DNA of 64,000 bases from Takakia lepidozioides (Eukaryota; Plantae; Bryophyta): positions 77,996,001 through 78,060,000 of the forward strand of contig CM060731.1 in assembly GCA_030704615.1 (NCBI GenBank), given 5' to 3'. Under the pieces are notes generated by a model, which was not told where the DNA came from, did not search any database, and saw only the letters and a list, made by a program, of their open reading frames with translations. Positions 7,271-36,490 of this stretch are shown here, in pieces. The translations under genes were made by a program, and so were the position numbers. The first letter of the stretch is position 1; each line of letters starts with the position of its first letter.

Positions 7271-8052
7271 GATCGAGGTCTGATGGTGCACCTTCGGGTA
7301 TCGAAAGTTATTGATGTTTCTATGGTAGTGAAATTATTTTTAAGGTCAAATCCACCTTTGGCAGCTAGAGGTGCCGGATATGAAAAATATATATATGGAG
7401 ACTTAAACTATAAAGCCAAATCGCAATTTGAGGGACTCTCGCAAGAATTTCAGGGGCTAAAATTGGAATTTGAGGGGGGCCCTCAAATTGCAATTTCAAT
7501 GGCATATGTGGCCATCCGTGCTTGCATACACAGACTTATAGTATAAGTCATCAATATTATTTATTTATATCCGGCCATCCGGCCATCCGACCATCCAGAT
7601 TTGTATGTGGTCATCCAGATTTCTATCTGAACAACATGTTGTGGACAACACATTGGTCGACAACCATCCTTATCCGAAGCCCATTTTTTTTGAACGGATT
7701 GTCGTAAAGCATTCCAACAATTGGGAGCCGGACGATTTCAGGCAACATAAAAAAGATTAAATAATATTTAATCAAATAACAATTATCTACAAGAGACCTA
7801 CATGAACGTAGAATGGTTGGTAAGTGTTTTCATGTCTTCTCTTTTATGTATGGCACCATGTAAAATGTCATATATGATTATGCAAAAAATTGAGGAAGGA
7901 CAATTCTGAAATTGAAATTGATTTGTATTTTCAATAGTCAAAAAAACATTAAGAACCGTTGTTCGTGACATACACAAACCTACAACGCCATGGGTAACAA
8001 AGGTTTACACCAAGAAGTACCAACCCCTCTCTACACTAGCACTCTTTCAAAA

Positions 8053-11923: not shown

Positions 11924-12514
11924 TGTCAAAGACGAGAACATGACTGAACACAAACAAGATATCAAACTAGAGGTACAAGACTAGACAAGAAATCAAGGTC
12001 GGCGTGGCCGAATGCATGATGGGTAAACATGAATCAAGATGATCTTTATAACAATTGACAAGAATACAAGATACTGGAACTTGATTCGAATACTGGAATG
12101 CTGGAAACTGGAGTAGAGTACTGGAAGATGGACTGAAGTATTGGGACTGGGAATAAGAGTAGCTTGAACTTGTGTTGGCGAGACTGAAGAATGTCCAGTC
12201 TCGCCTCCTATATATACTGGCTACAAGAAAGTTCCTTAAGAAGCTTCCCCAATGAAGGTTTTTTTATGGAGAAGTGTCTTTAAACAAAAGTTTCTTGAGG
12301 GAGAAAATTTCCTTAAATAAAGAAGACATCTTGATGGAGAAGTTTCTTCCAAAAGAAGCTTCATGAGCAGTTTCTCAAGTTACTCTTGGTAATTTGATAA
12401 CTAATAGTAATTTATGATAAATCATGATAAATTATGGTAACTTTTGATAACTTCGTAACTTGATAACTTCTGGTATTTACTCCTGGTAAGTTCCTCTGGG
12501 CTATGTCTGCGACA
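11924..12514 (-). repeat. 3' LTR of the Tcn1-like element
   Basis: TGTCAAAGACGAGAACATG...CTATGTCTGCGACA aligns with 17671-18268; adjacent PPT GTAGAGGAGGGGGTGA on the minus strand. Confidence 0.95.
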
Positions 12515-13129
12515 TCACCCCCTCCTCTACGCCGAGTTCCTCGAGGAGCGGTTAAATCTTGGACTTGCTTAGAGTTGGAAAAAATCCAAAATCCGGCGAA
12601 TGATACTTGCCAAGTATTCAGCTTTTCATTCTTGACTCAAATGATTTATAGGTCCTTGCAACCATCGATAGTGTCCAACACCTTGAACTTGGGACCACGC
12701 AGTGATTTGAGCATTCTGATTTTCGAAGCTGCCTTTCAAACATGATTTCGTTGCCCTCTGGATTCGAAGCCTCAACCTCCAACATGATTATCAGATTTCG
12801 TACCTCCACTTGTCGTCGTACGAGGTCCAGACGAGGATGTACGCGTCGCATTTGTGGCTTATCGTCTCGAGAACGTCGCCGTGATGTTAAAGGTCGTGAG
12901 AGTCGAAACGGCTGATCTGGTAGTTGGGTAAGCGACAGCTCCAATGTATCTGGTTCTTGTGACTCCATGCTGCCAATACAAGATGCAGAGTGTTGGAAAT
13001 GTAGCTATATATACTGATGTGTGGTGCTCCTCCCTCTTTAGTGTGTATCAGGTACACTGAATGTGGAGTCTTCACCTTGAAACTTGGCTGACATCATCAT
13101 TGTGATGTCTTATTGACGTGTAGCTCGGA

Positions 13130-16100
13130 GCTTAGCTAGATATCGTTGATGAAACTCTCGAACTTTGTCAGATGCATTGGCAAGGTTGGATGAAGGTTCT
13201 CACGTTCGTTCGTTCGTTGACGTCGTAGCCGTTCTAATGTACGAAATACTCAAGACGTTTATACTTGATGCGAGAGTCTAGGACTTCGTCGACTTCGTAC
13301 TCGATTTTCTGATTGACTTCGATTGGTGGAGGTGGTATGGAAACTCTCCCTGGAATATTCGATGGATGATACAACTCCAATAATGAAACATGAAAGACTG
13401 GATGGATGCGCATACTTCGTGGGAGTTCAAACCGAAAACTGATAGGATTTATTTGTCGAATAATTTTGAATGGTCTTAGGCGTTGATAATCCAACTTCCT
13501 TGATGGTCGCGAGGTTTGTATGTCCCGTCAAAAAAGCCACACACGATCTCCGACCTTGAACTAGGATTGAAGTTGTCGATGTTGATCTGCATATTCCTTG
13601 TATTGTTTTTTAGCTTCTGCTAGGTGGAATATAAACTCATTGTGAATCGTAGCAAGATGAGTAGCAAGGTTTTCTGTAGCAAGGCTTCCAACAGTCTTCA
13701 TGTGGAAAGGGTTTGCTCGAGGATGATGACCATAATTGGAGAAAAATGAAGTTTGTTTGGTCGAAGAATATATAGTGTTGTTGTAAGCAAATTCAGCCAA
13801 GGGCAGAAGGTCCGTCCAATTATTTTGGTGATAATTTATCGTACAGCGAAGATACTGCTCCAAAATTTGGTTTACGCGTTCGGTTTGACCATCAGTCTGT
13901 GGATGATTAGTTGTAGAAAGGTTGATCTTAGTATCCAATATGTGAAATAATCCTCTCCAGAAATTTGATATGAACTGTGGTCATCGATCAGATCAATGTC
14001 CTCCGGGAGTCCATGAATGCGGAAGATATTATTGAGGAAGAGTCTTGCAGTTTCCTCACCTGTAACCGTCTTATTACATAGAATGAAATGTGTCATCTTC
14101 ATAAAGGATAATAACAAGGACAATAACAAGGATTGAGTCGGTGGTCTTGGAAATTGGAAGGTCCGTAATAAAGTCCATAGACAAGGACAACCATGGACCC
14201 TTGAGAATGGGTAATGGTTGAAGAAGGCCGTAAGGTCGATGTCGTGGTCCCTTCATTCTAGCACGCGTGTCACAAGATTTTATAAATTCTTTCACAAGTT
14301 TCCACATCTGCGGCCACCAATAGTCTCTAGATATCAATTTCATTGTTTTGTTGAAGCCGAAATGTCATGCAGCCGGAAGATCATGACAAGTTTGAATAAT
14401 TGAAAGTCGTGTAGATCCTGGAGGTACATAGAGAAGTCCCTTGAAATAAAGTATATCATCTTTGAATTCGAAGTCGTTTGTAACATGTGGGTTGTCTCGA
14501 GGTCGATTTAGTTAACTTCGTACTGTCGTAGCAAGCTCTTCAGTGCTTCCTGAATCTCTTTTATGATCTCTGCATTGTCATAGGTGGATATGGATAGCAT
14601 ATTCAATTGGAGGTTTGCTGGTTTTAAGATGATGGATTTCTATTGGTCGAAAGCTGTCTCCCTTTTTTTCGGCGCAAGATACGATCGTCGAGAAAGAGCA
14701 TCGGGTTTCCCTTGAAGATGTCCGGGGGCGATAGGTAATAACAAAATCAAACCTTGCTAGTGACATACCCCATCTTGTTTGACGTCGATTCAAAACACGA
14801 GCACTCATAAAATATTCGAGGTTTTTGTGATCGATGTAGACAGTAACCTGATGTTTAGCTCTCTCTAATAGATGATGCCATTCCTCAAAAACATCGATGA
14901 TCGCTAGAAGATCTTTGTCATGGATTCACAATTGATCTCTGCAACGGAAAAATTTGCGAGAACGAAAACCAACAGGGTGAAGTCGGTCATCTATACCGTA
15001 TTGAGATAGTATAGCGCCAAGTACGAAGTTCGATGCATCTGCTTCCAAAAAGAATATTTTAGATGGATCTGCATATACTAGTGTTGGAGCCGTTGTAAAT
15101 GTCTGCTTCAACCTTTCAGATGTCTGGTCAGCCTTCTCGTCCCACACAAATTTTTCTTTTCATGTGAGTCGTGTCAATGGTGTAGCAATTGCCAATTTTG
15201 GAGTAGTCATTGATGAAGATTCTATAGAAATTTGCAAAACCCAGGAAACATTGTACATCTCGGACGGAAATTGGTTTACTCCACTCGATGATAGTTTGTA
15301 TTTTCTTCTGATCCATAAAGACGCATTTGTCGGAAATAATGTAGCTCATAAATTCGACCTTAGATTCATAGAAAAGATGTTTTTCCAACTTGACATATAA
15401 TCTTCTTTCTCTTAATTTATCAAGGACCAGGCGTACATGACGGTCATGTTCTTATTCATTCTGTGAAAATATCAAAATGTCGTCCAAATAGATGACTACA
15501 AAGTCATCTAAAAATTCTCGAAAGATATCATTCATCATATGCTGAAAAATTGTTGGAGCATTTGTAAGACCGAAAGGCATAACACTGTATTCAGAATGTC
15601 CATACCTTGTTCGAAAAATTGTTTTCCATTCGTCTCCTTCTTTTATCCGTACAAGGTTATAAGCTCATCTCAAGTCAATTTTGGTGAAAAATTTTGTTCG
15701 TCCAGCTGGTCGAGAAGCCCAGAAATCAGCGGCAACGGATAACGATTCTTAATTGTGTCTTTGTTAAGACCGCGATAGTCTACACACATGCGTAATGATC
15801 CGTTCTTCTTTTTCACAAACAAGATAGGTGCCCCCGCAAGTGATTTTGAATGTCGGATGAAGTATTTCGACAAATTTTCATCAACATATTCACGTAATGC
15901 AGCCAACTAGTTATAGATTGGGCCGAATGGTGGTTAGGCTTCTTCTTGTAACTCAATTGCACAGTCGCAATATGTCTGCATTTTTCTACTCAAAGACATC
16001 CTTGAAATCTTGATATTGAGTGGGTAATGTTGAAGTACATTTGTCTGTTGTGGTCTTGATCGGAGTCGCATAAAGTGCAAATGCCGCATTATTTTTGGTA

Positions 16101-17631
16101 GCTCTCATGAAAGCTCTAGCTCCAAGGAACAGGGGTTGAATACCTTTGATATTTCTACATTTTGTCTTGCAGAAATTTTTCGCATCGCCAGTTGATGTCA
16201 GGATTGTAAAGTACGAACCAGAGAGGTCCAAGGATCACAAGATTCGTTGGAGACTGGATAACATTGAAAACAACATGTGATGCTTGATCTTTAAGCTTCA
16301 CTTCAAGTGGTCGAGTTTCATGATCAACATCTCCTGATGCTAACGGTCGTCCATCGATGACTTCAACGGGGGCCGAGAGTTTCTTCTTTACTAGCGTTAA
16401 ATTGTGTTGCTTCGCAAAGTTTTTGTTAATAAAACTTGCTGAAGCCCTTGAGTCCAAAAGTGCATCAACAGATATATCTCGATTTTGCGCTCTGATTTTT
16501 ACCGGAACTGTGAAGCAAGGTTCAGGGTCTGGAATTATAAAGAAATTTTTTTTCGGTGAGGAATTTGTGGTGTTCAGCCGCATGGTCCATATTATGACTG
16601 GATATCTTCGTTTCCGACCTCCTCGTATCGAACACTTGAGTTGCGCCCCGAGTTTTGAATCTTCTCTTGTTGGGGCAGTTAAATGTTATGTGATCTTCTT
16701 CTCCGTAATAGAGGCATAATCCATTTGAACGTCGTCTTTGTTTTTCTTGTGGCGTCAATGGCTTGAATCGGACAGCATCAATCTGCATAAGATCACTACC
16801 GGATGTCTGATGGATCATTGTGTTTGGTGCCGTAATAGCAGCGGCATGATGCGTCAACAACCATCTAGATCGTTTCTCTTGACGTCTTTCGAACAAACGA
16901 TTATCGTATGCAATGACTTGGGTGATGAATTCGCTTAATGTGCTCGCGTTTGGCATTGTCAGCAACAAATCTTTTACATCATGTTTTAGCCCACATCGAA
17001 ACTGACTAATAAGGCTCTTTTCATTTCAGTAGAGGTCGCACGCAAGTTGTCGAAATTCGGCATCATAAACGAAAGAAGGACGTGCTCATTATAAAAGATT
17101 TCGCATCTTTGTCTCTGCAACTCTCTCTCTATCATTCTCTCCAAACATTGCAGTGAACTCGGACATGAACGCTTCAAAATTGTATAGTAAATGCGATTTT
17201 TTCTTCTTCTAATAACGGTGTAAATCAAGATAGGGCAGTGCTTTATAGAAGGGTGCCCACGAATCCCACTTGAATACCTTCATCGGGGTAGCGTTATAGA
17301 TGTAGTCGTATGAACATTCGTATTTGTTGAACAAAACCGCAAAATCTTAATCTCGTCCCATCAAATTTCTCGGGCATGCTGATATTTGATCTCTCGTAAT
17401 TTGTTGAAGAGGAACCGTTGCAGTAGGAGCTGGTGCAGTAGGGACTCGTATGGTTGAAGATCCATTGTTCGACTCTTTTAAGTCTGAAATTTGTTGTTGC
17501 AAATTGTAGAGAATGTTGCCAAGATCTTGAGACTGATCAGCTTGTAATTGGGCGGTAGAGGTACGAAGTTCTTGCATCTGGAGCTGAAGACTCTACAATG
17601 TGGCCACCATTTCCGCAAATGTGTCTTCCAT
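13130..17631 (-). pseudogene. gag-pol (Gag zinc knuckle, protease, RT, RNase H, integrase, chromodomain)
   Basis: CLYYGEEDHITFNCP knuckle, ALLDSRAS protease, [11 protein letters not shown] and YLDD RT, LEADASNFVLGAILSQ RNase H, LSMDFITDLP / HPQTDGQTERVN integrase, EYEVDEVLDSR chromodomain. Many frameshifts. Confidence 0.95.
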
Positions 17632-17657
17632 CTTAACTAACTAATGCAACAAACTTT

Positions 17658-17670
17658 AGTCTCGCCAAAC
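17658..17670 (-). promoter_or_regulatory. Self-priming primer-binding site
   Basis: Minus-strand TTGGCGAGACT just after the 5' LTR is complementary to AGTCTCGCCAA (17930-17920, minus), which lies ~31 nt downstream of the LTR TATA box (17954-17961). Confidence 0.75.
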
Positions 17671-18268
17671 TGTCAAGGATGAGAACATGACTGAACACAA
17701 ACAAGATATCAGACTAGAGGTACAAGACTAAACAAAAAGTCAAGGTCGGCGTGACCGAATGCATGATGGGTAAACATCTATCAAAATGATCTTTATAACA
17801 ATGGACAAGAGTACAAAATAACGGAACTCGACTCGAATACTGGAATATTGGAAACTGAACTAGAATAGGAAGCTGAACTGGAGTATTGGGACTGGGAACA
17901 AGAGTAGCTTGAACTTGTATTGGCGAGACTGAAGAATGTCCAGTCTCGCCTCCTATATATACTGGCTACTAGGAAATTCCATAAGAAGCTTTCTCAATGG
18001 AGGTTTTTTGATGGAGAAGTTTCCTTAAACAAAGATTTCTTGAGGGAGAAGTTTCCTTAAACAAATGACGTATCTTGATGGAGAAGTTTCCTCCAAAGGA
18101 AATTTCCTGAGCAGTTTTCCAAGTTACTCTCGATAATTTGATAAACTCCCGGTAATTTGATAACTTATGGTAACTATGGTAAATTATGGTAGATCATAGT
18201 AACTTTTGATAACTTGATAACTTTTGATATTTACTCCTGGTAAGTTCCTCTGAGCTATGTCTGTGACA
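17671..18268 (-). repeat. 5' LTR of the Tcn1-like element
   Basis: TGTCAAGGATGAGAACATG...CTATGTCTGTGACA; contains TATATATA and the GGCGAGACTG/CAGTCTCGCC hairpin. Confidence 0.95.
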
Positions 18269-18808
18269 AAACATACATATGATTATGTCTATGTGTACAC
18301 TTCAAAAAAGTAGTGTATTCATGGATGAAGGCACGGTATACCGTGCTATGTCACGTGGCATCGCGCCACGCTGCGCTGGACCACGTAACACTGTTTTTTT
18401 TTAAAAAGTTAATTAGTATGTATGATATATGTATTTTTTTATATACAATAAAAACATGATATGTACACATATGTAGTTAATAGCTATATTGGTTAATGTG
18501 TAGTGTAGTAGAAGTGATATTCAAGTGGTCAAAGCTTTATCCTCCACATACAATTAGATAAATTACTATGACTAATAAGATATGAATGATTAGCATATGG
18601 GAGCTCTAGGTGATCGACATGTGGTTAAAATAAATAATTTTTTAAAATAAAGAATGCCACATGGCGCGGCGCGGCCCGTCATGTGCAGTAGGAATTGTTT
18701 TGAAAAAATACTTAAAACATATATTTTTAAAAAAAAACTTGATGAGTTGCGCATCGCTTGGTGCAACAATTTGAATATTAATTTATTCTCTATTCATGAT
18801 ACTAATGT

Positions 18809-20570
18809 TTGACCCTTCAACTCATGGTTTTGGACGAAGTATCTCTCATTGGCAACATAATGCTTACGTTTGCATACATGAAATTAAGGTCAATCGAACG
18901 CATATACTATCATTTTTTTGGAAACCTAGATGTCATCATTACTAGAGATTTTCATCAAGCACCACATGTGAGAGAAATAAATGTAGGACCAGCTTCATTA
19001 GCTCAAAAAATTTGGCATGATTTTATTACATGTTATGACCTAAACCAAATTATGCGTCAATCAGATACCCAGTTCATAGATATATTGAATCGATTAAGAA
19101 CAGCCACACAAACATAAGATGATATACATGTTATTAACAATCAGTGTTGTCGTCCACCATCTAACAATTCTACATTTCCATATTTGTATTATACGAACAA
19201 AGAAATGTTAAGGCACAATGAAAAAATATTCAAACAAACAATCGGACAAATCTATATATTTCAAGCTGTTGATAAACATCACGATATATGCCTTTCTAAT
19301 TTCAAATTGCTGGATAATGCCAATTCCACAACGGGTTTGCATACAACGATTCATATTAAGAAAGATAGGTTAGTAGAATTGTGCGCATGAAATTATGCAA
19401 CACATGATGGACTTGTGAACGGAGCCGATGGAATTTTTAAACATTTCTCTGTTTTGTCAAATTCAACTATTTTAATATGGATCCAACTTAATAACCCGAA
19501 ATCAGGAATTGCTACGTGTGCATTATATATATATAATCAAGAGGATATAAAAACCATGCCAAATTGTTCGTTATGGACGCCAATCCAACCAGTTTCAAAA
19601 GAAATACAAATATGATCTAATACAAAACATATCATCACCAGAACCCAATTTCCAATTCAATTGGCTTCTGCTCGAACTATCCATTGTTCCCAATTATTAA
19701 CTTTGGATTATTTAGCGTTCGACCCTAAGGGTATAAAAAAAACATGGTTTAACATACACACACTTTCGCGCATTCGACCAAAAACAAATTTACATCTTAT
19801 CACACCTTTGCAATCAAACAATTTGCATGTTGATAATGGCGTTGCCGACGAAATGCAACGGTTTCATACTTCTGCTCGTTGGCAACTATTAATTCCCATT
19901 CTCATGTTATAGATAATCAAACATCATTGTGCAATCTTTGAACACTAGATCGTTGTCGTTACATAAAGAGGATGTTTTTTCCAACTTTAATATACAATAA
20001 TCTCATACAATGTGCTTTAAGGAAACTCACTTCAATCCAACAAATTCAAACATTGAATTGTTCTTTAATACTACATTGTACTCTTATCTAGCGGTTCATG
20101 CAAGCCATGAAATACTTGTATTATACGACCATACTATGTCATTAGCATCAAATCAAATACTTTCAAATGAAGGTGCTAAATATATAGCTGCACCATTTAA
20201 TTTGAATACCAGGAAAACAATTCACATAATTGCGGTCCATAAACCTCCAACACTACAATTAACTATTTTTTATCTTCTCTCAAAAAGTTCATTGATAATA
20301 TCCTACAAACATGTCCAACAATAATAATAGGGGATTTTAATGTAGATCTTTTACAAAATAATACCATAACAACAAATCAATTGTAAAAGTTCATGTCTTT
20401 TTTTCACATGCAACTACAATTCTCAATTAGTACTACTATCTATGGATCTCAACTAGACCATGTTTGGACAAATGCACCTCATCAACACTGCAATATCTGG
20501 CATTACAGAATCATAATATGGGACGGACCATAAACCTATATTTTTTGCTTTTAAATTACCTAATTACATT
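18809..20570 (+). pseudogene. Helentron PIF1-like helicase followed by an EEP/AP-endonuclease domain
   Basis: Helicase motifs LMVLDEVSLIG, FFGNLDVIITRDFHQAPHV, IMRQSD..FIDILNRLR, GLVNGADG, RTQFPIQLASARTIHCSQ. Then EEP motifs SLNTRSL, CFKETH, IIGDFNVD, SQLDHVWTN, TDHKPI. Confidence 0.9.
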
Positions 20571-21247: not shown

Positions 21248-21383
21248 TAATCCAAAATTGTAAGCTTTAATGCATTGTTGTTACCAAATATAGCATTTTT
21301 TTCCATATTTAATAATTATTTACAATTATTTATCAGATGTCCAGATTTCACACTTTTGTCCACATTTACTTAAAATGGTGTTT

Positions 21384-22105
21384 ATTGTTTGAAATGCCAC
21401 CTTTTCATGCGGAAGGTCTTGGAATTTGGAGCTATTTTATGTGTCTGGTGTCTAGGACCATTGATTCTTCATATTTGGAGGTTCATTTTTTTGCAACATT
21501 ATATCAAATTATCGTTAAATTAGATTTTTTTAATATTTATATTTTAATTCCACATACTTTTTCTTTTCTTAAAACATATTGCTTATAATGGGTCCTCCGA
21601 ATGCCGAAGGTCCATCATGGGATTAATTTCCACACAAGATTCGGAAAAGATTCCTATATGATCTGAGACTTTCTTAATTTACTTCAGGTTTGTCGTGTGT
21701 CCTTTATACGATTTTTCTGGGATTTTTGATGTACCTGCTTTCTATATATTGTTTGAAATGCCACTTTTTAATGCGGAAGGTCTTGGAATTTGGAGCTCTA
21801 TTATGTGTATGGTGTCTAGGGCCACTGAACCTGAGATTCACTTTCTTACAACATTATATCAAATTATCGTTGAATTGGATTTATTTTTTGTGTTTCTATT
21901 TAAATTTCCACCTCTATGTATAAATTTTTTTTAAACGAATTATTTTTAATGAGACCTTCGAATGCCGAAGGTCCATCATGGGGTTAATTTTCCCAGAAGA
22001 TTCGTAGAAGATTCCTAGAAAATTGTTATGATCTGAGATTTTTTTAATTTACTTCAGGTTCGTCGTTTGTCCTTATACGTTTTTTTCTATATACCTGCTT
22101 TCTAT
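21384..22105 (+). repeat. Tandem duplication, 2 copies of a ~345-360 bp unit
   Basis: TTGTTTGAAATGCCAC...GCGGAAGGTCTTGGAATTTGGAGC at ~21385 and ~21749; ATGCCGAAGGTCCATCATGG at 21601 and 21962. Confidence 0.9.
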
Positions 22106-23709
22106 GGAATTTCGCATTCTTGAAATATTATATATATTTATTGTAGAACTGTTTGTTATTTTTTTTATAAATTACTTTTTATATTTAATTGTCATATGTA
22201 ATAAATATATTTACTAATCACTTTTATTAAATAGATATTATTTTGAAAGTGTATTACTGGTTCATTATTATTTTGATTTTTCCTCATTTTCGTCGCCACA
22301 TGTGTTGTGGGTCACATCCGCCATCAAGAGGATGTCACATTTAATTCCGCGGATTCAATTTCCTAATTGATTGTGGGCCGGTGGGAAAGGATATATTAAG
22401 CACTTGTTGCCCTACCTTATCCAGAGGGACCAACCCCACTTTTTCTGCTTACCTTACGTAGAGAAATGTGATGTCTCTAAATCATGTTATGCTCTAGGAA
22501 GCAAATGTAACCCTACTAGTACTGTGTCAGGAGAGCAGAGTTTTGGAGGTGGCTATCAGAAATGTGGTGGCCATGTTTGTTCTCGAGAAATGGATGAGGT
22601 GATGTTAACTTTTTCACTTTGTATAATTATCTTTTACCCCTGCTCTGTTGTTAGAGCAGCCTATAGTTTAGGGCTTCTTTGCCCGTCTTGAGCACCTGGA
22701 GAAGGCCGCTGGAGTAGTCCGCGTTGTGCGTATATGCGAGTATATGTGAGTTTGGTTGCAAAGGCGTTGAGCATCGACGGAGTTGTTTTTGTTCTTTCTC
22801 GTTATGTGCACTTTTGCTTTTGCGAGTTTGTTTGAAGTCCTTGAGTATCGCAGCTGATGAACTTTTTTGTCATAAGCTGCACGGTTGCTTTTTAAGTTTG
22901 CTTCTCGTAAGCTACACGTTAGAGGTTGCGTTTCTAGGTTTGCTTTCTTCGTTTGCTACTCCTAAGCATCTCACTGCAGCTTGTTTTGCTTTCTATATTT
23001 GCTTTCTAGGTTTGCTACAGCTCGTTTTGTTTTTGCTTATTTGGGTCTGTCATGCGGACACAAGTTAGAGAGAGAGTGCAAAAGTGTTGAGGGAGAGAAC
23101 CACAGATAGAATGTAGAAGAATGATGAAACATAATAAGGTGGGAGATGCACTCACATCTTTACTTAGCCACTGGTGAGAATGAAGTCTTTTACCAATTCT
23201 ATGCGTTCTTCCTCCTTGTTTGGCATGCTTGGTTTTTTCTATATGCTTGCTACTCCACTTCTGAATAGTACTGAATCCTTAAGATGGGTCCTTTGTTTAC
23301 TATTTCATAAAACTCCGAGAGCCTAACCGAATGCGTTCTACTAAGCCACAGTAGTTGTTTTACTTTTTCGTTTGTTTATGCTTGCTTCTGGGCTTTGATT
23401 GTGTGCAGGATGCAGAGGGGGGCGAGAATTTCTCCCTCTTGTCAGACGAAGGCCTTAGCAACCTCCTGGAGAGAACGGACATCCTGCAAAATTCTTTGAT
23501 TCTATTTCCAATTCCAGATGATGGTGAGCATGGAACAATGGAGGAAGACGAGGACCTGTACTCCTTACGTCGATCGAGCGTTGTTGCCGACGACAAGTGA
23601 GCTGGGGCTGGTACATCTGGCGGCTCCGTCAAAGAAGGGCATCGCGGGTGGGAAGGGGGTACAGTAACAACAGTCGGACTCAGAGGTTCAATGTTTTGCG
23701 GCTCCCTGA

Positions 23710-25489
23710 AGCAACTTGTCATCAGGCCCAATGTGATTGTGCAGTATAGCCCTGGAGCTTCTGTGACGGTTTATACGATGGACTTGACATAAGTACAAAT
23801 AGCGAAATGGCATAGAAAGATAGTCCGTCACCTGAAACCACCACGTCTCTTTGGACAACCACTTGTCCATAATCTTGTTGGTGATTTTCCCATCAGTTTC
23901 TGGAAAGTGGGCTTCTGTCTACTGGGCAAGTGGTGCAATATGAAGCTTCAACCACCGCTGCTTCTCCTATGGGGATACTTCGGAAGTTGCAATTAGGTAC
24001 GTTCTCTCCAATCCCACTCTCCCCCCCCCCCCCTCCTGGCAAGTCTGTAGGGTTGGCAGAAACTCTGAGCCATTGGCTAGATCGCAAATGGGCAGCTTTT
24101 TGGCCATTTGCTTGGATCAGGCCTTTGCTTTAGGCAACATTTTTAGCTGCAACAATGGCAATGGCCATTCCCTCGCGGTTCCTCTCTTCTTCAGGGGTTT
24201 CCGCTTGATACCTGATCTTTGCTTGTGCAATTGCCTTCATTATGTCCCCATACATGCAAATCAACCAATCTTTATAAGCATCCTTCTTATGCATATACAT
24301 ATGTGATTCCAACCGACCGGAAAGCCACAAAGGTGAAAGGGTAGGGGGTACTTACATGGGCTAGAATCTCGATCATAGCCTCTTGTGCCATGGTATACCA
24401 TGTCTTCCCTGGTTCCTTCGCCAAAGACTTGTCATAGTGGCGTTTGGTGAGGAGCCCTTTGTATCGCTCCAAAGGGCTTGGGCCGATCATTTGGATGTAC
24501 CAGAGCTTGTGAATATCATCGGTCTTCACGAACCGCTTCTCATTAATGCTGCAAACAAGACACGTAATTCGTATTAGTTTTCATCTACAATCATGTTGAA
24601 TGTACATTTGGAATTCCATTTCATTTCATGTCAATGTTAATTCAACAAGCAGATTAGTTGCATTACGCATTTGTTTGGAACATGGCAGCTTTGAGCATGC
24701 CGATAGTGCTGGGCTGGCATCGCAAATTCTTGGCTTGCACTCACACATGCCATGGTTTGTAATTTGTCGTCAAGGTGTTGATGAGCTTCAACCAAGTGTG
24801 CAAGCGGTGGTTACCATCCACACGTAGAACATCCAATTCTTCAACCATGCCCAATTTGCATCCGCTTCACAATTTGCATCAAACTCGTTGCTAACATGTT
24901 GCCAGTGTGCACTCCACCCTCCTTAGATCTCATCCGTCACCAACGCGGGATTTTCCAGCTCTTCTATAGGGGCCAAAAAGAAGTATCCACGACCTTCCAC
25001 ATATTACCCATTTGTTAAGAAATACTCTCTCAATGCATCCCCTGCATTCTCCCCAACTATTGGCCTACTTTTGGGATTCAATATCATTTTGCAAATAGGC
25101 GCAATTGGAGGCAGGGTGGGTTTAGTAATTGCCAGTTTATTCACAACGGACTGCAGGTTTTCAGCATTGTGATCATGAAGGACCTGTAACTACTTCATAG
25201 CATCAACCTGCTCCAACTGTTCATCTGTTAAAGAAGCAAGCGCTTGAGGGTTAGGAGGCCCCCGCCCCCCCCCTTTCCTAATCATTGTACAAGGAATGGG
25301 TTGTTGTTGTTTCTCTAAGGAGTGTATGATGGAAATAGGTTGTTGTAGAGGCTATGGACCTGTTCCTAAAGATCAGAGCAGATACAGATGAGGGGGGTAC
25401 ACATGCATTGGAGCAGTGGATTCTGGAATGGAAAATGAAGGCGTACAAAAAATTATTCAATCCGGAGATCGAGTCCCATCGCTGGACAT
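23710..25489 (-). pseudogene. ParB/Srx-like domain protein, spliced, decayed
   Basis: Minus-strand translation ...GDALREYFLTNG*YVEGRGYFFL...WMFYV(W)DGNHRLHTWLKLI..., with DGNHR at 24804-24818. Phase-consistent intron at ~24549-24666. C-to-T-type stops and frameshifts. Breaks off after ...WWFQVTD...PDDKLLQ. Confidence 0.65.
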
Positions 25490-26589: not shown

Positions 26590-27355
26590 CCATACCCTGT
26601 GGCGTCACCCACCTTCGTTGGACGCTGCCTATAAACTGTTTTTGGATTGGCAGAAAATAGATTAATTTATCTATTTTTTTAATTTTTGATCTCTAGTTGA
26701 GGTTTCCGATACTATACTTGATTTATAAGTAGTTTGATTTACAACAACCTCACGACTTCACCCACCTTCGGTGGACGTAGGTGGGTCTTTGGCAGGCCCT
26801 ACCATCTGATCAGATTGGGAGGAGTTGGTAAAAAATTAAGTTTCCATTTTAATTATTTTGTTTTTGTGGGTGAGGGCCTTGTCTTGTCTTGTCACTGTCT
26901 TCAGTGGGCATAGGTCCATCCTTGAAAGGCCGAGGCCCCTCAAATTGCAATTTCAAGGGCAATATGGTCAGACTGGCAGCGAATTAGAACAATTTTTCTT
27001 TTTCCTATTACTTGTTTGTCTTTCAAGAGTTTGTGGTTGACATTTCGACCCTCCTGTTTTGTCCCCCCTCCTTCGGTGGACATAGGTTGGTCCTTGACAG
27101 ACCCACATATATGGTCAGATAGGTAGTAATTTAGAAAACATTAATTTACTTTTTTATGTCTTGGTTTCTTTCAGGCTTTACGATAGAGGTTTTTGACCGG
27201 TTGAGTAGAATAATTATATAGTCGAGTAGGCAGAAAAGTATAATATTTTTTTTAAAAAAAAATCTTTTGTTTTCCCTTTCAGTGTTTGAGGTTAAGGTTT
27301 TCGACAATACACCCCCCTGTCTCATCACCCACCTTCGGTGCACGTAGGGTGGTCC
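26590..27355. repeat. Repeat region with four CACCCACCTTCG-N5-CGTAGGTGGG-type dyads
   Basis: Dyads at ~26606 (half), 26760, 27068 and 27326; 26590-26830 aligns with 36121-36370. Confidence 0.8.
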
Positions 27356-27502
27356 CTGGGTCCATGATATGTGGTTTAAGTCCATTTGATATCCTTCTTA
27401 TCCACCCCCATTTTGACCTTTGTATGTCTTTATAATTAAGTGTTATTAACCACACATGGTTTCTTAGGGTTACTTGCACAAATTTAAGTGTTTGTGATCA
27501 AG

Positions 27503-28102
27503 TTACCAAAAGAGGAGTTATCCAAGGTAGCCGCGACTAACGCATTTGTGTAACAAATTTGACGGGGAGTACGTCAAGCTAAAGAGAAGCTGATGGTTGC
27601 CCAAAATCGCCAAAAGCAGTATGCAAATGCACGTCGACGGGATGAGGAGTTTGCAGTTGGGGATCAAGTGTGGTTGCCTACAATCAATTTACACATCATT
27701 GGATCGCGAAAACTAAGGGCACGATTCATTGGTTTTTTTTCGATCATTAAACGCATTGGAGCAGTAACATACAAGCTGGAGTTACCACCACATATGAAGA
27801 TCCACCCGATGTTTCACGTTTCTCTACTACGTCGTTACGAACCTCGACCATCGATATTCAAAGATAATCAAGAACCACAACCTTTACCAGAGTTGATAGA
27901 CCGAAATGAAGAGTGGGAGGTCGACCGTGTTCTGAAAAAATGCGCATACAAACGAGGACGACATAAGGTGTTGGAGTATTTGGTTTTATGGAAAGCATTT
28001 CCATTATATGAAGCTACCTGGGAACCGGTGCAAAATCTCACAAATGCTCAATTGGCAATTCAAGCTTTTGAAAATTCGAACAACGAGGACGTTGCTTCTT
28101 GA
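27503..28102 (+). pseudogene. Inverted integrase C-terminus (GPY/F region) plus chromodomain
   Basis: AQNRQKQYANARRR..FAVGDQVWL, IHPMFHVSLL, EWEVDRVL..EYLVLWK..ATWEP. Followed by PPT GAAAGAGGGGAGGA at 28101-28114. Confidence 0.92.
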
Positions 28103-28115
28103 AAGAGGGGAGGAT

Positions 28116-28552
28116 TGTAACAAGGTAGAATCTAGAAGGTTCTAGATGGAGGAGGAAAGTTCCCTAGAAGTTTCCAGAATAATTAGGAAGGATCCTAAGA
28201 AGTTTGACTTAATGAAGTTTGACTTGAGGCTCTAAAGTCAAACCTCTAAGATATTCATATTATGGAGAGTAGGTCAAATCTTTGATAAAATCATATTGTA
28301 GAGAATATGTCAAACCTAGGAAGGTTGACTTTAACAAGTATCTTTGATAAAGTCGTATTGTAGAGAATATGTCAAACCTAATAAGGTTGACTTTAGGAAG
28401 CTTTGACTTGAGGCTCTCAAGTCAAACATTTAAAATAATTATATTGTGAAGGGTATATAAACCTGCAATGAAAGCCTAAAAGGCATCGAGTTGTTTTGGG
28501 AAAAAATTGAGAAGTACTTCTATTCTAGTTTGTATAGATCATGGGTGTTACA
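28116..28552 (+). repeat. 3' LTR (inverted relative to the element body)
   Basis: TGTAACAAGG...GGGTGTTACA is the reverse complement of 33949-34369; internal ~61-bp duplication. Confidence 0.95.
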
Positions 28553-29371
28553 GGAATACTCATTCCACACAGGGACATGACCAGCCTCAAAGCCTACCGC
28601 AGGATCAACCGGATCAACAACATGTTCGTCTAGAAGCTCGCAAAAAAAATGTCAACGTTTTCAGGAAGACCCGGTTTCTCACGATTTATAGATGATTCAG
28701 TCTCCACAGCATTAAAGAACTTGTACAATGAGACAAGTAATGTCTCCCTCTTTCCAGTTCTACAAAGGTTTGTCAATGTCTCCAAGTCCCCCTGTAAACA
28801 CATCACATTCGAAGCTGATGCGGCTGTAAAAGAACCAATGTACCTTGCCGACCAAACAATCTTGTCGCTGCTACTCCCACTATGACTTCTTTTCTTCTTG
28901 AGCTGCTCCCCATCATTTGCACTTCCTGCAACGTTAGAGTCTCCACGATCAGAGTCAGTGATCGCTTTCTCTCCCGCGTTCATCCCCTTCATTGTAATGT
29001 ACTGTCTCCTTTTGTTTTTTGCTATGGCTGCTTCTGCAACTTTAATCCTTTCATCCTCCAAAGCAACTGCAGTTTTCGTGGCCTCTTTCTGCCGGAAGGA
29101 TCACTTTGTTGCCCGAGCATCGGGCTGCAATCCATGATTCTCATCACCCACATTAGGCTACTCCTGGGCAATTTTTTCTCTCTCTCTTTCTCCTGGAGGA
29201 CCGTCAAATGTTAGGGGGGTAGTCCAGATACCACGGACACAATTCAACATGAAGTGGGTTCATCTTTGCAGTCTAATCTCCAACGAATATAGTGTTTTCT
29301 CATTTACAGTAGTTGTCCACGCCTCGGCCACAGAGGGAAGGTTATCTTTCTCATAGATCTCAAGAAAATAC
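28553..29371 (-). pseudogene. Inverted middle exon of the N4/N6 DNA methyltransferase-like gene
   Basis: After an AG acceptor: YFLEIYEKDNLP...ELCPWYL...ENVDIFF(C)ELLDEH...GHVPVWNEYS. It reads in frame across the TSD into 34375. Confidence 0.7.
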
Positions 29372-29387
29372 CTACATAAACCACTTC

Positions 29388-32300
29388 GTAAGAGTTGTTG
29401 GCACATTTGGGTGTTCACCATACATAAAAAAAAAATGAGTTTCTTTCGTTGACGCGTTGACCGAGTTATTGTATGAAAATTCTACCAATGGTAATAACCA
29501 ATCCCACTCTTCTTGTTTTTCTAATGTAAAGGCCCGCAATATGTCTTCAATTGTACGATTCGCTCTGTCTGTCTGTCCATCTGACTTCGGATGATAGGCT
29601 ATTGACATAGCTAATTTGGTTTTAAAAAAACCAAATAAGCTTTTCCAAAACAAACTAGTAAATTGGGTACCCTTGTCAGTTATGAAAACTTTAGATAGCC
29701 CATGATGAGAATAGACCGCTTCCAGATATAGTCGAGCTAGTTCATGTGCAGTGACGGATTTTTTAGTGGGACGGATGTTTATCATTTTACTCAATTTATC
29801 TGCAAAGACCACTATAGTGTCGTATCCCGATGAGGTTTGAGGTAACTCACAAACTAAATCCATGCTCATATGTTCCCAACGTCTGTTTGGTACTGGTAGT
29901 GGTTGTAAAAGACCTGCTGCTGGCTTGCGGTTTGTTGACTTGTTTTGTTGACATTTCATGCAACTTCGAACGTACGCCTCCACCTCATCTCGCATCCGTG
30001 GCCAATAAAATGTTCGTTTTAATTGTTCGAATGTTTTTTCAACTTCAACATGTCCTGCTATCGCCGTATCATGAGCTTCAAACAAGACTTCTGTCTTCAA
30101 TGCATGTTCATCAGGGATCCAAAGTTTACCTTCCTTGAATACCAATCCTCAAATTTCTGTCACTTTGTCATTCTTCTTAGCGTCCACGATCTCCCCATCA
30201 TCTTTAGAAGCCGTCGCTATCTTGTTCCACCAATCGGGTTGAATGTTGATTTCTGTCAATGTGTTAATGCGCGACATTCTTGTCATTGCATCCGTCAATT
30301 GTCGTTTTTCCTCCACATAAACGATCTTCATGTTACATTGTTGTCGTCACTCCGCCCAACGAATCTGTCTCTTCGATAGATCTTTCTGTGTCTCCAAGTA
30401 CACCAACGGTTTATGGTCTGTCTCCACTATGAACTCTTTATCTCCAAGATAGTGCTTCCAATGTTTTGTACCCAAAACAATGGCTAATTCTTCTCGTTCG
30501 GTTATTTGGTAATTTTGTTCCGCAGGTAACAATTTGCGAGAAAAATATGTCACTGGGTGCCATCCGTCTTCCCATTCTTGTTGTAACACCCCACCCACTA
30601 CTGAGCCTAACACATCTACCGAGAGCTTGATTAGTCTTGTTGGATCATACCATTTCAAGATCGGGGCATGAAGCAACGCATCCTTCAAGGCCTGAAATGC
30701 TAACTCCTCTTCTGTACCCCACTTCCATCTAATTCCTTTGCCCAAAAGATTTGTCAATGGTTGGGCAATATTTGAGAATGCCCGTACAAATCGTCTGTAG
30801 AATCCGGTAAGGCCAAGAAAACTCCTTAATTGGGTAATGTCTTCAGGGGCTATCCACTGCTGAATAACTTCTATTTTCTCACTCATTACCTCAATTCTCT
30901 TCCTACTCATGCGATGCCCAAGATAATCTACTTCTTGTTTTCCAAACTCACATTTAGATGTTTTGGCATATAGCTGATTCTCACGGAGAACTTGTAATAC
31001 TTGTTTGAGGTGGTTTCTATGCTCGACAAGGCTGTTACTGTAGATCAAAATATCATCTAAAAAGACTATCACAAATCTATCTAAGAATGGACGGAATATA
31101 TCATTCATGAGGCCCATGAATGTGGCTGGGGCATTGGTGAGACCAAATGACATAACCATGTATTCAAAATGTCCATACGTAGTGCGAAAAGCGGTTTTAT
31201 ATACATCTTCATCAGCGACTCGAATTTGATTGTATCCACTCCTCAGATCAAGCTTCGTAAAGTATTTTGCTCCTCGCAGTTGGTTAAATAGATCGTCCAT
31301 GCGTGATAACGGATACTTGTTCTTCACTGTCTGCTGGTTGAGTGCTCGATAATCAATGCACATGCGCATTGCTCTATCTTTTTTCTTCACTAACAACACC
31401 AGCGCTCCATACGGGGATACACTTGGTCTTATAAAACCTTTTGATAATAGGTCCTCAACTTGAGCTTACATTCTTCCAACTCGTTTGGTGCTAATCGATA
31501 AATGACTTTACAAGAAGAAGTATTACTTGGAACAACCTCAATCTTATGATCTACTCTTCTCTTTGGCGGAAACCGTGCTGGTAGGTCATCTGGAAAGACA
31601 TCTTTGAACTCTTTCAATACACTCTGTAATTCTATAGGGACCTCACTCATGTCTTTTTTCGGATTTTCCACGTCTCTTATTAAACCTACAAATAATAATT
31701 CTTTCTTACATATAGCTGTAGTACCTATAACAAATGATGGTAGGTTTCGATATAGTGTCCTCACTCGATCTCCCTATATTTTTCCAATTCTGGGTTTTGA
31801 CTATCTTTCGACGCCAATCAACATCAGGGTTGTGAGATTCCATCCAAGACATGCCTAATATTACGTCATATCGAGCCAGTCTGACCACTCGTCATTCTAA
31901 GATTTCTCTATATTTACCAATTGACAACTCTATGTTTTTAGGTAGTGTCTCAATGGCCTCTGTATGTCCATTTGGCATTTCTACTTCCTCTCTTTCATCA
32001 TTTTCTAAGGGGAGTCATAGTTTCAAGGTAGCCTTTCTAGATAAGAAATTTTCTGCTGCCCCAAGGTCTATTAACACTCTCACATAAATACCTTCCAAGG
32101 TTCCATCTGCCACAATTAACTGCGTCTCTTTCTTGCCCGCATGATTGATTTGTCTCTTCTCCTTGTAGGGCCCCTCGCCTTTCCTCTTCTTTGTAGAACC
32201 AGTAAGACCGCGAAGTCTACTTACTGGTTGTCATCGTTTTCCTGCTCATTGTGATGTTCGTTATCTTCTCCTTTTCTTAAGAGGTCTTCGATAAGTTTTG

Positions 32301-33296
32301 TCGATTGTACCTTCCACTTCGGCAGTTGGCTGCAAGATGTCCGTATTTTCCACAGTTGTAACATTGTCTAGTTTCCCTTTGTCCTTCTATTCGTGGGAAT
32401 GTTGAGGAGGTCACATCTTTGTCATTCAATTTCATTCGCCGCTTTGGGTTATCTTCCCCATATCTGATTCCCGGCCTATTTCTTTGAGAGTATTGGAAGT
32501 TATCCCGTCTTCGAAGATTTCCAAGCTGTATAGGCGTTGGTCCGTATTGGTTCAATGGAACGTGTATACCTTCGTCGTATTTTGGTAGCATCCCTTCAAT
32601 CTTTTGGGCCAATGAAATTGCTTCGTGGACATCAACCGGGTTGAGTAAAATTACTTCTCCTTGAATTTTCTTCTTCAATCATCTTTTGAAGTTGTCTAAA
32701 GCTTCTGCAGGACTCATGTCTTCGATTTGGACCTGAAGATTAAAAAAATCTTCAATGTAATTTTGCACACTCTCACGTTGTTCCAAATTCCATAATTTTA
32801 TTCGAGCAGTTGTAACAGCATCTACTGCCTTGAATTGTTGGAGCAGTTCCGCTTTCAAGGTGCTCCATAGTAAATGTTCTCTTTTTGCAATCTGTCTTCT
32901 CTCCCATGTCTGTAACCATGTTGAAGCATTGTCGAGTAGAAAAGATCGTATGAACATTCCGTGGTCCAAATCACTTGATGTAGGGAAATATGACAGATGT
33001 ATTTCCATTTGATAAATCCATCTTTCTAGTACTCCCATGACGCGACTTCATTTATACGGCTTGACCTTGCACAACTTGGTCATTTTTTGCAGTAACGTAT
33101 CCGACCCATCAGCAACCAGTCCCGGGGCGGTTGATTGTTTCACTTGTTTAAGCTCCTCCATCAACACGTTGTTTTGTTGTTGGGTCATGACAAGAGCATT
33201 CTGCAATTCATATAAGCGCTCCATTATCCACACCGTCTGATCATTGGCTTGATGAGTAGTGTGTGCATTGTCCACCATTTCTTCATTGTCCGCCAT
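29388..33296 (-). pseudogene. gag-pol of the second chromovirus
   Basis: CYNCGKYGHLAANC knuckle, VLIDLGAA protease, [10 protein letters not shown] / FLDD RT, RNase H, HMSMDLV and YHPKSDGQ integrase. Truncated at the inversion breakpoint. Confidence 0.95.
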
Positions 33297-33948
33297 CTTG
33301 CTCCACTACTCCTTCCTTCGTGGTGTTTGTCTTCTAAAATTAATGTATACTATCTCTATTCTCTTATCCTAACACAGTATGTAAATAGTGCAATCCCAAA
33401 CCATCCCGTATGTGACTATTGGTAATACAAAAAGGACGTTTGAACTCATGACAAGGTTCATGAATTCTACCCCAAATTTTGCAACTAAAAATCTCACAAG
33501 ATGATGTTTATCAATGACGCGTACATTGATACTAAATATATTTGGCGGTGGAAAATTAGGCGGAAAATGTCTACCTCGATCCATGAGCTATGTATATACA
33601 CATATGTATACCTTCCAATTTCTAATTATAGGAAAGACGACATGTCGTGGGTTTTGTAACACTTCTTAATATTGTTCCTCTCCAAATCTTTGTACTATCA
33701 TATCTCTAATTTCTGCTTTACGACGACATATAATTTTAAACTCACACTCCGAAAGAAAATCACAGAAATGTGGTTGATTTAAGTCCATAAATTTTTTATA
33801 CTATCGTTATGATGCACCATCACTACTATCTATTCAACATTTAAAAATATTAACGACAAAAATCTCTAAAAAAAAAAACATCTCAATCGAATCCTCCTAA
33901 AGAATGTATTCACTCCCAACTTTAAGAAAGATTAGGTTCTGATACCAT

Positions 33949-34369
33949 TGTACACCCATGATCTACACAAACTAGAATAGAAGTACTTCTCAACTTTTTC
34001 CCAAAACAACTCGATGCCTTCTAGGCTTTCATCGCAGGTTTATATACCCTTCACAATATTATTATTTTAAAGGTTTGACTTTAGAGCCTCAAGTCAAAGC
34101 TTTTTAAAGTCAACCTTCCTAGGTTTGACATATTCTCTACAATACGACTTTATCAAAGATACTTGCTAAAGTCAACCTTCCTAGGTTTGACATATTCTCT
34201 ACAATATGACTTTATCAAAGATTTGACATACTCTCCATAATATGAATATCTTAGAGGTTTGACTGGAGAGCCTTAAGTCAAACTTCTTAGGATCATTCCT
34301 AATTATTCTGAAAACTTCTAGGGAACTTTCCTCCTCCATCTAGAACCTTCTAGATTCTATCTTGTTACA
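33949..34369 (-). repeat. 5' LTR of the second chromovirus
   Basis: TG...CA ends, adjacent Met PBS, flanked by ATTCC (minus-strand GGAAT) at 34370-34374. Confidence 0.95.
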
Positions 34370-35473
34370 ATTCCCATGAGAACATGCTCAATGCATTTGA
34401 CATTGTTTACGATTTCATTGAGGACAACAGATGTTTTATTCTGATTGTCCCAACCGATCTCCGTACGATAATTCGTAGGCACACCGAAAAAAAGGAGATG
34501 ACGATGTTCAAGACTTTGACATGCATCGATGACAGAGACTTGAGATGCAATACGGGAAATGTAATCACTTTTGCTATTCCTTGCAAAATTTTGGATATTA
34601 TTTTATAACTGTTCCAAATCTAATCCTTTCATATGTTCCTGCACTGATGCTATTCTTCAACGTCCATTGTTTGGTGCTCGCGAGTTGCACACAATTTGAA
34701 ATCAGTGACCAAGTGTTTCTCCGCTGATATGTTGCGACATTTTCTACCTTCATCTGAGATGACAATGTCACCAAATGATTATCCTTATAGAGGTCGCAAA
34801 GAGAAATCCCCCGCATTCTACGAGACAATCATGGAGCTATGTTCAGCTGAGGAGGCTAAAGTTATGGATTTGTCTGCTTTGGAAAATAACATTAATTCAT
34901 GTATTTATACATGTCTCTTTTGTAATTAGACTACTATTAAGTATGTCAAGGTTTTGCATATGCTTTGCTTTAACTGGAAACGGGTTATCGTATATTGGCC
35001 GAGTTAGTTGATGTTGTAGGAAACTCGGTGAAAGCCGCAATTACATCCGGCAGATACATCATTGCAATGGAGAGTGATTTTGAGCTGTTCGATGACATTT
35101 AAATGAAGCCAATGATGGACACTGGCCCGAAGAGAAGACGACCTCCTGGGCCACCTACTAGAAGGTTTGCAGTGAAGTATGTGGACACATCAGATGGCGA
35201 TGGTGATATGTGAGTGAGTCATCTCACAAACCTTCTTTGAATATTAGTCAGTTTCTCGGGTTATTATAATTATAATTATTATTATAAATGAGTTTGACTG
35301 CGTGGTTGCATTTGTGCAGGCACACAAATGTGAGGAGGCAGAAGTGGGATTTGCGTGCCTACGCCGCTGACATACCCATGATCCCACAACAGTTTCCGAT
35401 GCTCCCAATCTACGCAGAGGCTGAGACCGAAAGACAGACATCATCAATACGAGAAAATGAGTGGGATGACTAG
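34370..35473 (+). pseudogene. Class-beta N4/N6 DNA methyltransferase-like C-terminal exons
   Basis: YRGRKEKSPAFYETIMELCSAEEAKVMDLSA / GNSVKAAITSGRYIIAMESDFELF parallels HPTQKP..L...I...S..GD.VLDPFAGSGTT..AA..LGR..IGIE.D of beta-class amino-MTases. Introns and stops present. Confidence 0.7.
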
Positions 35474-36120: not shown

Positions 36121-36490
36121 CCATATCCTGTGGAGTGACCCACCTTTGGTTGGTGGACGAAGGTGGCTCCTATATTGCCTATAATGTTTTCGTATAGGCA
36201 AAAAAATATTAATTTATCAAATTGTTTTATACTTGATCTATGGTTGATGTTTCCGACCCTATCCCTGATATATAAGTATTTTGCTTTATAACAACCTCAT
36301 AAGTTCACCCACCTTCGGTGGACATAGGTGGGTCTTTGGCATGCCATAACATATGGTCAGATTGGCATTAATTGAGATTTTTTTTATTTTTTTATTTTTT
36401 TTTCTTATTATTATTATTATTATTTTTCCGCAAACCGGCCCGTGTTCTACAACTGCGGAGGATACCTCCTTCGTTGGCCGTAGGTGCTTT
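36121..36490. repeat. Second copy of the dyad-bearing repeat
   Basis: Dyads at ~36138, 36306 and 36464; aligns with 26590-26830. Confidence 0.8.

Follow-up and report, generated by a model that had tools for sequence, protein, structure and literature searches.

Remnants in the Takakia lepidozioides genome as the probable halves of one gene with ParB/Srx-like and methyltransferase-like parts

The giant transposon Sola1-1_Ec32 of Ectocarpus encodes a 1104-aa accessory protein with ParB-like and N4/N6 methyltransferase parts, and similar ParB-methylase proteins are cited for green and red algae (PMC12477816). The Plavaka/Mutator elements of red algae carry PAG2, in which a PF01555 methylase is joined to SET, and PAG3, in which a ParB-like domain is joined to a 2-oxoglutarate (2OG) oxygenase; inverted-repeat arrays adjoin PAG3 (10.1101/2025.02.11.637652). 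In chlorophytes and chytrids, Dam-clade methylases are fused with a helix-turn-helix (HTH) of the ParB type (PMC4738411). Our literature search found no land-plant report of such ParB-methylase genes. Here, we analyzed a stretch of 64,000 nucleotides from Takakia lepidozioides (NCBI GenBank assembly GCA_030704615.1, contig CM060731.1, positions 77,996,001 to 78,060,000 of the forward strand), referred to below as the window, which contains a minus-strand gene remnant with a DGNHR motif and, nearby, a methyltransferase-like remnant. Judging from their exon content, the two remnants are probably the halves of one multi-exon gene, parted by a retrotransposon and inversions.

Complementary exon blocks in the two remnants

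Relatives of the DGNHR remnant were found by scanning a metagenome collection with a degenerate-codon pattern for YVWDGNHRL. The scan returned 29 loci, 28 of them family members and one (L006) a bacterial chance match. The member loci lie on AT-rich, intron-rich, plant-like contigs, some of which are tens of kb long, and whose names we take to be those of peat-moss-associated metagenomes. Comparison of these relatives defines eight conserved blocks, a to h, in a fixed order on one strand (Table 1). The DGNHR exon is always followed by c, d and e and then by the methyltransferase-like blocks f, g and h on the same strand; with iterated block profiles, 15 loci have e, 11 have f and 9 have g downstream and co-oriented, and no relative has a block on the opposite strand. 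In several diverged groups of paralogs, the chain from a to h is collinear and its gaps are of intron size; both modules appear from this exon order to be encoded in one gene in the relatives. The first-pass annotation, which had proposed such a fusion, feared relatives that end before a methyltransferase part or a divergent arrangement as the norm; neither was seen among them.

Each block profile was also run on the complete set of 2,690 stop-free pieces from the six frames of the window. The profiles place b, c and d in the DGNHR remnant and e, g and h in the methyltransferase-like remnant, in line with the earlier proposal that these are two halves of one gene. Every block is single in the window, none occurring twice, and no similarity was found between the two remnants. 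This complementary, single occurrence of the blocks suggests that the remnants are complementary halves of one gene. A collinear match of both halves to the same loci, the check that the first-pass annotation had called for, was obtained by tblastn: in both L013 and L029, the DGNHR pieces and the piece at 34974-35099 find matches that share one strand and follow the order core, d, h. Block d of the window matches L009 in addition to these two loci, and the relatives finish the block-d exon at the same place as the window, at CAG/GT.

Two side observations concern the relatives. Five of them from two paralog groups (L014, L015, L017, L019 and L032) have a stop at the same conserved tryptophan of block b, at the WD.H[W] position, and this common stop suggests that an already dead copy was amplified. 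On the contig of L021, which holds a 3'-truncated family copy, another open frame lies at 4832-5344 on the minus strand; by our own reading it is presumably a host gene of the endosomal sorting complexes required for transport (ESCRT), Vps36 GLUE-like, which fits the metagenome contigs being plant nuclear DNA.

Table 1 Features of the window, with profile matches and block consensus sequences of the relatives (L/I/V-type alternatives in brackets; dots, any residue).
Feature	Position	Strand	Basis and remarks	Top profile match (E)	Consensus in relatives
Family block a	25189-25007 + 25003-24926	-	end-to-end alignment A3 with metagenome relatives; split by stop 25006-25004		IPLC..PTL..D..KME..FQ.GY
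Family block b, with MFYVW/DGNHRLHTW	24922-24744	-	profile match, alignment A2; DGNHR 24818-24804, stop 24743-24741	24922-24791 (9.9e-7)	W..HW..N..F ... YVWDGNHRLQAW ... DWHVSV..VLD ... ELL..M.NLN
Family block c, exon after intron	24580-24290	-	profile match; between b and d in family order	24580-24290 (4.3e-5)	
Family block d, last recognizable 5'-half exon	23918-23832	-	ends ...WWFQ, then GT 23831-23830	23918-23691 (0.013)	ending ..FWCQ/GT
Family block e, core (…HVELCPWYLDYPPN)	29272-29207	-	profile match; WYLDY motif in the family's H...C context	29272-29207 (0.027)	..DPK...NWSS.H...CGWYLDY
Family block f, first half (motif-IV region)	28651-28553	-	ends at retrotransposon insertion site		whole block: GD..VDLV..D[LIV]P[SN] ... 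FL..DG.LL.F..DDP
Family block f, second half	34375-34470	+	directly after ATTCC duplication		
Family block g, leads to S-adenosylmethionine (SAM)-loop motif	34648-34926	+	profile match	34648-34926 (0.0053)	ending ..IVDFNCG.G
Family block h, methyltransferase motif-I distal part, ...NS..AA..SGR.II..E.D..F	34974-35099	+	profile match	34974-35099 (1.7e-4)	NSI.AC..LGR.ILALE.D..IF
Ty3/gypsy body: gag, zinc knuckle, reverse transcriptase, RNase H, integrase core, 5' long terminal repeat (LTR; 34369-33949)	29383-34369	-	Pfam		
Ty3/gypsy 3' end: integrase SH3 + chromodomain (27593-28102), 3' LTR (28116-28552)	27498-28552	+	Pfam, repeat comparison		
Inversion 1	27498-29382	.	integrase C-terminus, chromodomain and 3' LTR now +; blocks e and f' (first half of f) now -		
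29-nt quasi-palindromic motif, three copies	26759, 27064, 27326 (stretch 26759-27354)	+	between the two halves		
29-nt quasi-palindromic motif, fourth copy	36306-36334	+			
Helitron remnant, DUF6570	6698-7054	+	profile domain match		
Helitron remnant, PIF1-like helicase	18806-19114 (remnant stretch 18806-19909)	+	domain match		
Direct LTRs of second retrotransposon, ~600 bp	11924-12514 + 17671-18268		86% identical		
F-box protein with At3g26010-type propeller	62.3-63.1 kb				

The DGNHR remnant is real and occupies 25351-23832 of the minus strand. Its core carries three in-frame stops and a 1-nt deletion inside MFYVW/DGNHR. The first-pass annotation had described a spliced gene starting at the ATG at 25489. 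The MFYVW/DGNHRLHTW motif on the minus strand and an intron in this region stand, but the proposed start does not fare as well: the single minus-strand frame from this ATG to 24791 contains six in-frame stops (first bases 25459, 25375, 25354, 25192, 25006 and 24925), leaving the start of the gene unverified, and 25351-24666 is one decayed exon rather than a set of spliced pieces. MFYVW is in frame from 25489 while DGNHRLHTW (24818-24792) is in frame -1, a single base being missing at 24817/24818.

Read contigs from the DNA runs that hold the stretch, aligned to the window at 80% likeness, put these lesions into context. The summed depth of the contigs over 23.5-25.5 kb is 120-380 versus a single-copy depth of ~36, indicating that several paralogs exist. 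Three paralog contigs from the same genome have an extra base exactly at 24817, and two lack the three letters that form the stop at 25006-25004; therefore, this stop and the deletion at 24817/24818 are confined to this copy or to some of the copies. In one paralog contig, the matches to 24345-24448 and 24656-24819 are separated by 206 letters unlike the window, and since only the two flanks are matched, an intron lies at about 24655-24449.

Retrotransposon insertion, inversion and the orientation of the 5' half

The element that disrupts the methyltransferase-like remnant is a Ty3/gypsy chromovirus-type LTR retrotransposon, of which the domains, the LTR pair and the 5-bp target duplication are all present. 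Its gag to integrase core spans 33.3-29.4 kb on the minus strand, its LTRs are 92% identical and now inverted to each other, and the duplication reads GGAAT at 28553-28557 and, as the complement, ATTCC at 34370-34374. In the reads, 4 contigs represent canonical copies of the element, and these connect 27498 with 29383 on opposite strands; the integrase frame stays open across this join. This indicates that 27498-29382 is an exact inversion (inversion 1), comprising the 3' end of the retroelement and 830 bp of flank. Its breakpoints are exact to the base, with one in the integrase and the other within exon e or slightly upstream of it. No exons precede the methyltransferase-like remnant, and the AG at 29373-29372, which the first-pass annotation had noticed as an orphan acceptor, is 10 nt from the breakpoint 29382/29383. 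When the retroelement and one copy of the duplication are removed to reconstruct the empty site, an 81-codon open frame runs through the insertion site, and its alignment to block f extends over the junction (E 0.08 at Z 2690). The SPNDYPY sequence at ~34770 was considered as motif IV and ruled out; block f lies at the insertion site instead.

With the upstream region and blocks a-d denoted S_A, blocks e and f' S_E, and the 3' end of the retroelement S_T, the present order is rc(S_A), rc(S_E S_T), the rest of the retroelement and then f'' (the second half of f), g and h. In window coordinates, the minus strand carries a-d (25.2-23.8 kb) as well as e with the first half of f (29.3-28.55 kb), and the plus strand carries the remainder of f together with g and h (34.4-35.1 kb). 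Undoing inversion 1 restores e-f'-element-f''-g-h on the plus strand and leaves a-d on the minus strand. Because a-d are still wrongly oriented, a second in-place flip of S_A or a single three-break event is needed in addition, in agreement with the second inversion that the first-pass annotation had postulated.

The same step could be read differently. If only inversion 1 and the retrotransposon insertion had happened, two separate, divergently transcribed genes would flank a palindrome array: undoing inversion 1 indeed leaves the halves head to head around three palindrome-bearing repeats, and PAG2 and PAG3 of red algae are separate genes (10.1101/2025.02.11.637652). We regard this as quite improbable because the blocks are co-oriented in every relative with enough sequence, where c, d and e bridge the two domains, because d and e, between which the gene is split here, are ordinary neighboring exons in the relatives, and because the 3' half lacks its own start. 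That the arrangement is an artefact of assembling repeat-rich DNA is hardly credible. Three junctions do lie within 6 kb beside a very high-copy retroelement, and the DNA runs covering the stretch stem from a single study and are perhaps the data used for the assembly; however, contigs of single-copy depth span 23500-24033, 28511-28915 and 28902-29412 without differences, in two runs.

Several observations weigh against the two remnants having been one gene. Three paralog contigs leave the window sequence at 23828, 3 nt past the donor of block d, and their continuation was not found anywhere in the window. None of the RNA runs holds the stretch, and they give no RNA evidence for the locus. Neither block a nor the first half of f has a significant profile match on its own among the 2,690 pieces, block b shows an identity of only 31-50% between the window and any of the relatives, and the relatives form several diverged paralog groups with many members that are themselves pseudogenes. 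The start of exon e in the window is not fixed statistically by the profile test. An AG followed by five codons at 23707-23691 (GAAKH at 23705-23691 after the AG) is a candidate; as the exon-e start once joined to 29382 it was set aside, since the profile test cannot separate it from the alternative junction. An argument from intron phase against direct splicing of d to e was dropped as uninformative.

The left end of the 5' half also belongs among these points. The first-pass annotation had the DGNHR gene break off at ~23710; this is not confirmed, as the last recognizable family block ends at 23832 followed by GT, and exact-match contigs run over 23710 with no visible break. In both DNA runs, the summed depth of the bin 23500-23698 amounts to the window's own depth and the depth of a single paralog contig together (98.6 and 60.1). 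This paralog contig shows small indels at 24024, 24132 and 24627-24641, and from its same depth and these indels it seems to be collinear with the window over 23500-24641. Either the break lies left of 23500, within a d-e intron that would be long, or the rearranged form gave rise to other copies. The collinear contig has ~2.7x single-copy depth whereas 25.5-26.7 kb, over which it does not extend, has a depth of only 1.5-2.4x, and the DGNHR half may form a separate repeated unit together with its left flank.

These depths are compatible with the remnants coming from different copies, the DGNHR half and its left flank having been captured or transduced, for example by a Helitron, next to an unrelated, 5'-truncated methyltransferase-like copy; Helitron remnants do lie at 6.7-7.1 and 18.8-19.9 kb on the plus strand. 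We nevertheless consider this origin unlikely. Block for block, the halves complement each other exactly, a-d against e-h; they do not overlap, each is present once in 64 kb, and they are ~4 kb apart without the retroelement, a neighborhood that would hardly arise by chance for a few-copy family.

We therefore return to the two remnants as halves of one gene. In this proposal, the window would hold one dead copy of a multi-exon gene family, with a 5' half for a domain that its invariant YVWDGNHRL box makes ParB/Srx-like at the motif level, and a 3' half encoding a degenerate class-beta N4/N6 DNA-methyltransferase-like domain. A Ty3/gypsy element inserted into exon f, duplicating GGAAT, and the segment 27498-29382 was inverted after this insertion. 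The segment with blocks a-d and the palindrome-bearing upstream region would have been flipped too, in a second inversion or as part of a three-break event. Given its stops, frameshifts and disruption, the copy is presumably non-functional.

Domain identity and palindromic repeats

The YVWDGNHRL box is nearly invariant in the family alignment, most of it having been required by the scan pattern itself, and the hydrophobic strand, G-x-x-R/DGxHR box and helix that mark ParB/Srx are found around it. The first-pass annotation took DGNHR as a mark of this fold: the motif is present, but Pfam, PDB profiles and AlphaFold2 lend no support. Pfam found no ParB domain in the window pieces or in 12 family exons, and PDB profile searches with the family alignments A2 and A3 found no ParB or Srx chain. 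In PHROGs, phrog_1033 ('ParB-like partition protein') was matched by 2 of 21 members at E 0.31 and was the sole ParB-like family. Alignment with hhalign to an F-plasmid ParB-like protein placed DGNHRL on GGRRL (P 0.14), while that to SopB (P 0.021) followed a path on another motif, so that the motifs of the two ParB alignments are inconsistent. For the 105-aa exon, modelled by AlphaFold2 from 12 sequences, the mean pLDDT (predicted local distance difference test score) was 45.7, too low for a fold search; the whole domain has no stop-free sequence. A ParB seed search gave one phage match only. The ParB/Srx name for the 5' half is accordingly used here as a provisional one, at the level of the motif.

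For the 3' half, the template was a small class-beta profile built from F-plasmid-type and phage enzymes, both confirmed as PF01555. With hhalign, block f aligned to positions 8-83 (P 0.00097), g to 133-221 (P 0.05) and h to 170-228 (P 0.08), while the control blocks e and c gave P 0.53 and 0.99. Blocks f, g and h thus align in the right order for the permuted class-beta arrangement, with motif IV N-terminal and motif I C-terminal. The piece 34974-35099 had two weak PHROGs matches, both to DNA methyltransferases, and ranked second of the 2,690 pieces with our own narrow methyltransferase profile (E 1.7). Pfam PF01555 at its gathering score had no match in the window pieces or in nine exon pieces of relatives. 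The catalytic (D/N/S)-P-P-(Y/F/W) is absent: the relatives have D-L-P-N, D-I-P-S, D-V-P-S or Y-V-P-S after VDLV.., and the window is further decayed. Amino-methyltransferase activity is doubtful with such a degenerate catalytic motif. The methyltransferase homology is weak but consistent, and the 3' half is probably methyltransferase-like, with the permuted class-beta order, and not a standard enzyme.

Other searches added little. Across all stop-free window pieces, Pfam, NCBIfam and PHROGs gave the remnants no domain but the weak methyltransferase PHROGs matches on one piece. Word-index protein searches with 61-aa and 156-aa pieces found nothing; phmmer with the 61-aa N-terminal piece, which is poorly conserved, returned two repeat artefacts only; PDB phmmer on window pieces found nothing; and Atlas look-ups gave no usable lead. 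When a bacterial ParB-methylase fusion was sought in phage and plasmid records, only stand-alone methylases were among the matches listed.

Repeats lie between and beyond the two halves. The direct repeats pointed out in the first-pass annotation were recovered at 26626-26818 and 36176-36365, with 82% identity. A 29-nt quasi-palindromic motif has four matches with ≤3 mismatches where 0 are expected, all on the plus strand, and none elsewhere in the 64 kb. Once the original order is restored, the copies at 26759, 27064 and 27326 would be inverted relative to that at 36306. In the relative L013, a tandem array of a 51-nt unit, which contains a perfect palindrome with 13-nt arms, lies at 7747-8097 between blocks e and f, and similar palindrome arrays occur in L029 and L008 (about 11440-11660). 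Further both-strand repeats were observed 1-2 kb upstream of the gene in relatives.

In the genome's reads, the contig depth over the 29-nt repeats is low-copy, like that of the gene remnants, and both remnants and the palindrome repeats share the same low copy number. This low-copy repeat status fits a mobile unit. A search for transposase domains around the remnants and in the relatives' longest open frames gave none, and neither terminal repeats nor a target duplication of a DNA transposon was found at the locus. In intact copies, the N-terminal domain may bind the palindromic repeats of the family, and the methyltransferase-like part could mark or shield the palindromic DNA or act as a pseudo-enzyme.

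Setting of the locus and comparison with described systems

The window is plant-like nuclear DNA rich in mobile elements, and the region of both remnants sits between Helitron remnants and the Ty3/gypsy element. In addition to the F-box protein listed in Table 1, a RING finger and a LOTUS-domain protein are encoded. The Helitron remnants are apparently split by a second LTR retrotransposon (11924-18268). Between the Helitron remnant and the DGNHR region, a two-copy tandem duplication with a unit of ~360 bp (80-91% identical) occupies 21383-22085. Left of block d, a 136-codon open frame rich in S, P, R and K is found at 23363-23770 on the minus strand (stop at 23362-60), antisense to an 81-codon acidic open frame at 23355-23597 on the plus strand; neither has a family match. 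The region 48000-56000 is GC-rich (52-56%); both of its strands contain proline-rich open frames, 280-bp repeats occur within it at 49264-50183, and Pfam gives no domain for the long open frames at 52838-53707 and 53922-55421.

Although the locus itself is dead DNA, it joins the DGNHR gene and the methyltransferase-like gene into one candidate family of fixed exon order, with eight conserved blocks that standard domain libraries miss, and it documents a clean compound rearrangement made up of an exon insertion, one exactly mapped inversion and a probable second flip. More tentatively, land plants may carry an undescribed, intron-rich family in which a ParB/Srx-like DGNHR domain is fused to a degenerate class-beta methyltransferase-like domain and accompanied by element-specific palindrome arrays. 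Such a family might be borne by mobile elements, recognizing and marking or shielding its own repeats, as a counterpart of the ParB-methylase accessory proteins of algal transposons. Its hosts would be this genome and the plant-like, probably moss, DNA of peat-associated metagenomes. On this reading, the algal theme of transposon-linked ParB-like and DNA-methylase proteins beside inverted-repeat arrays would extend to land-plant-like DNA, and the binding and modification of an element by its own proteins would become testable in a plant.

Among the described systems, the chlorophyte and chytrid Dam-clade fusions resemble the family in being eukaryotic and in pairing a ParB module with an adenine-methylase-type domain of prokaryotic origin. 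In contrast to the family, they belong to Dam/group 2 and not to class beta, and their ParB part is an HTH and not the N-terminal domain with the GxxR box. The bacterial and phage class-beta N4/N6 DNA methyltransferases (PF01555) and the ParB-methylase fusions of mobile elements share with the family the placement of motif IV before motif I, and the GD...VDL.. lead-in and the ..GR..I..E.D tail of PF01555 enzymes, such as the F-plasmid leading-region methylase, are present. Unlike in these enzymes, (D/N/S)PP(Y/F/W) is replaced by D[LIV]P[SN] in the relatives, the SAM loop is only partly kept and Pfam gives no match.

The red algal PAG2 and PAG3 are similar in that a weakly detectable ParB-like domain, a class-beta methylase and short inverted-repeat arrays occur in one repeated unit; the arrays may be compared with the four 29-nt quasi-palindromes of the window and the 51-nt palindromic array of L013. 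There, however, two separate genes carry the domains with other partners, whereas here we see one collinear exon chain with no SET or 2OG domain. The domains of Ectocarpus Sola1-1_Ec32, with which we compared the family by description, are found by standard searches while Pfam finds neither of them here, and the family differs further in its degenerate motif IV, its intron-rich genes and its land-plant-like DNA. The overall plan is alike: a single long product, associated with repeat-rich mobile DNA, in which a ParB-like part is N-terminal and an N4/N6-type methyltransferase part is C-terminal, and for which the role proposed in Ectocarpus is to bind and mark the element's own DNA.

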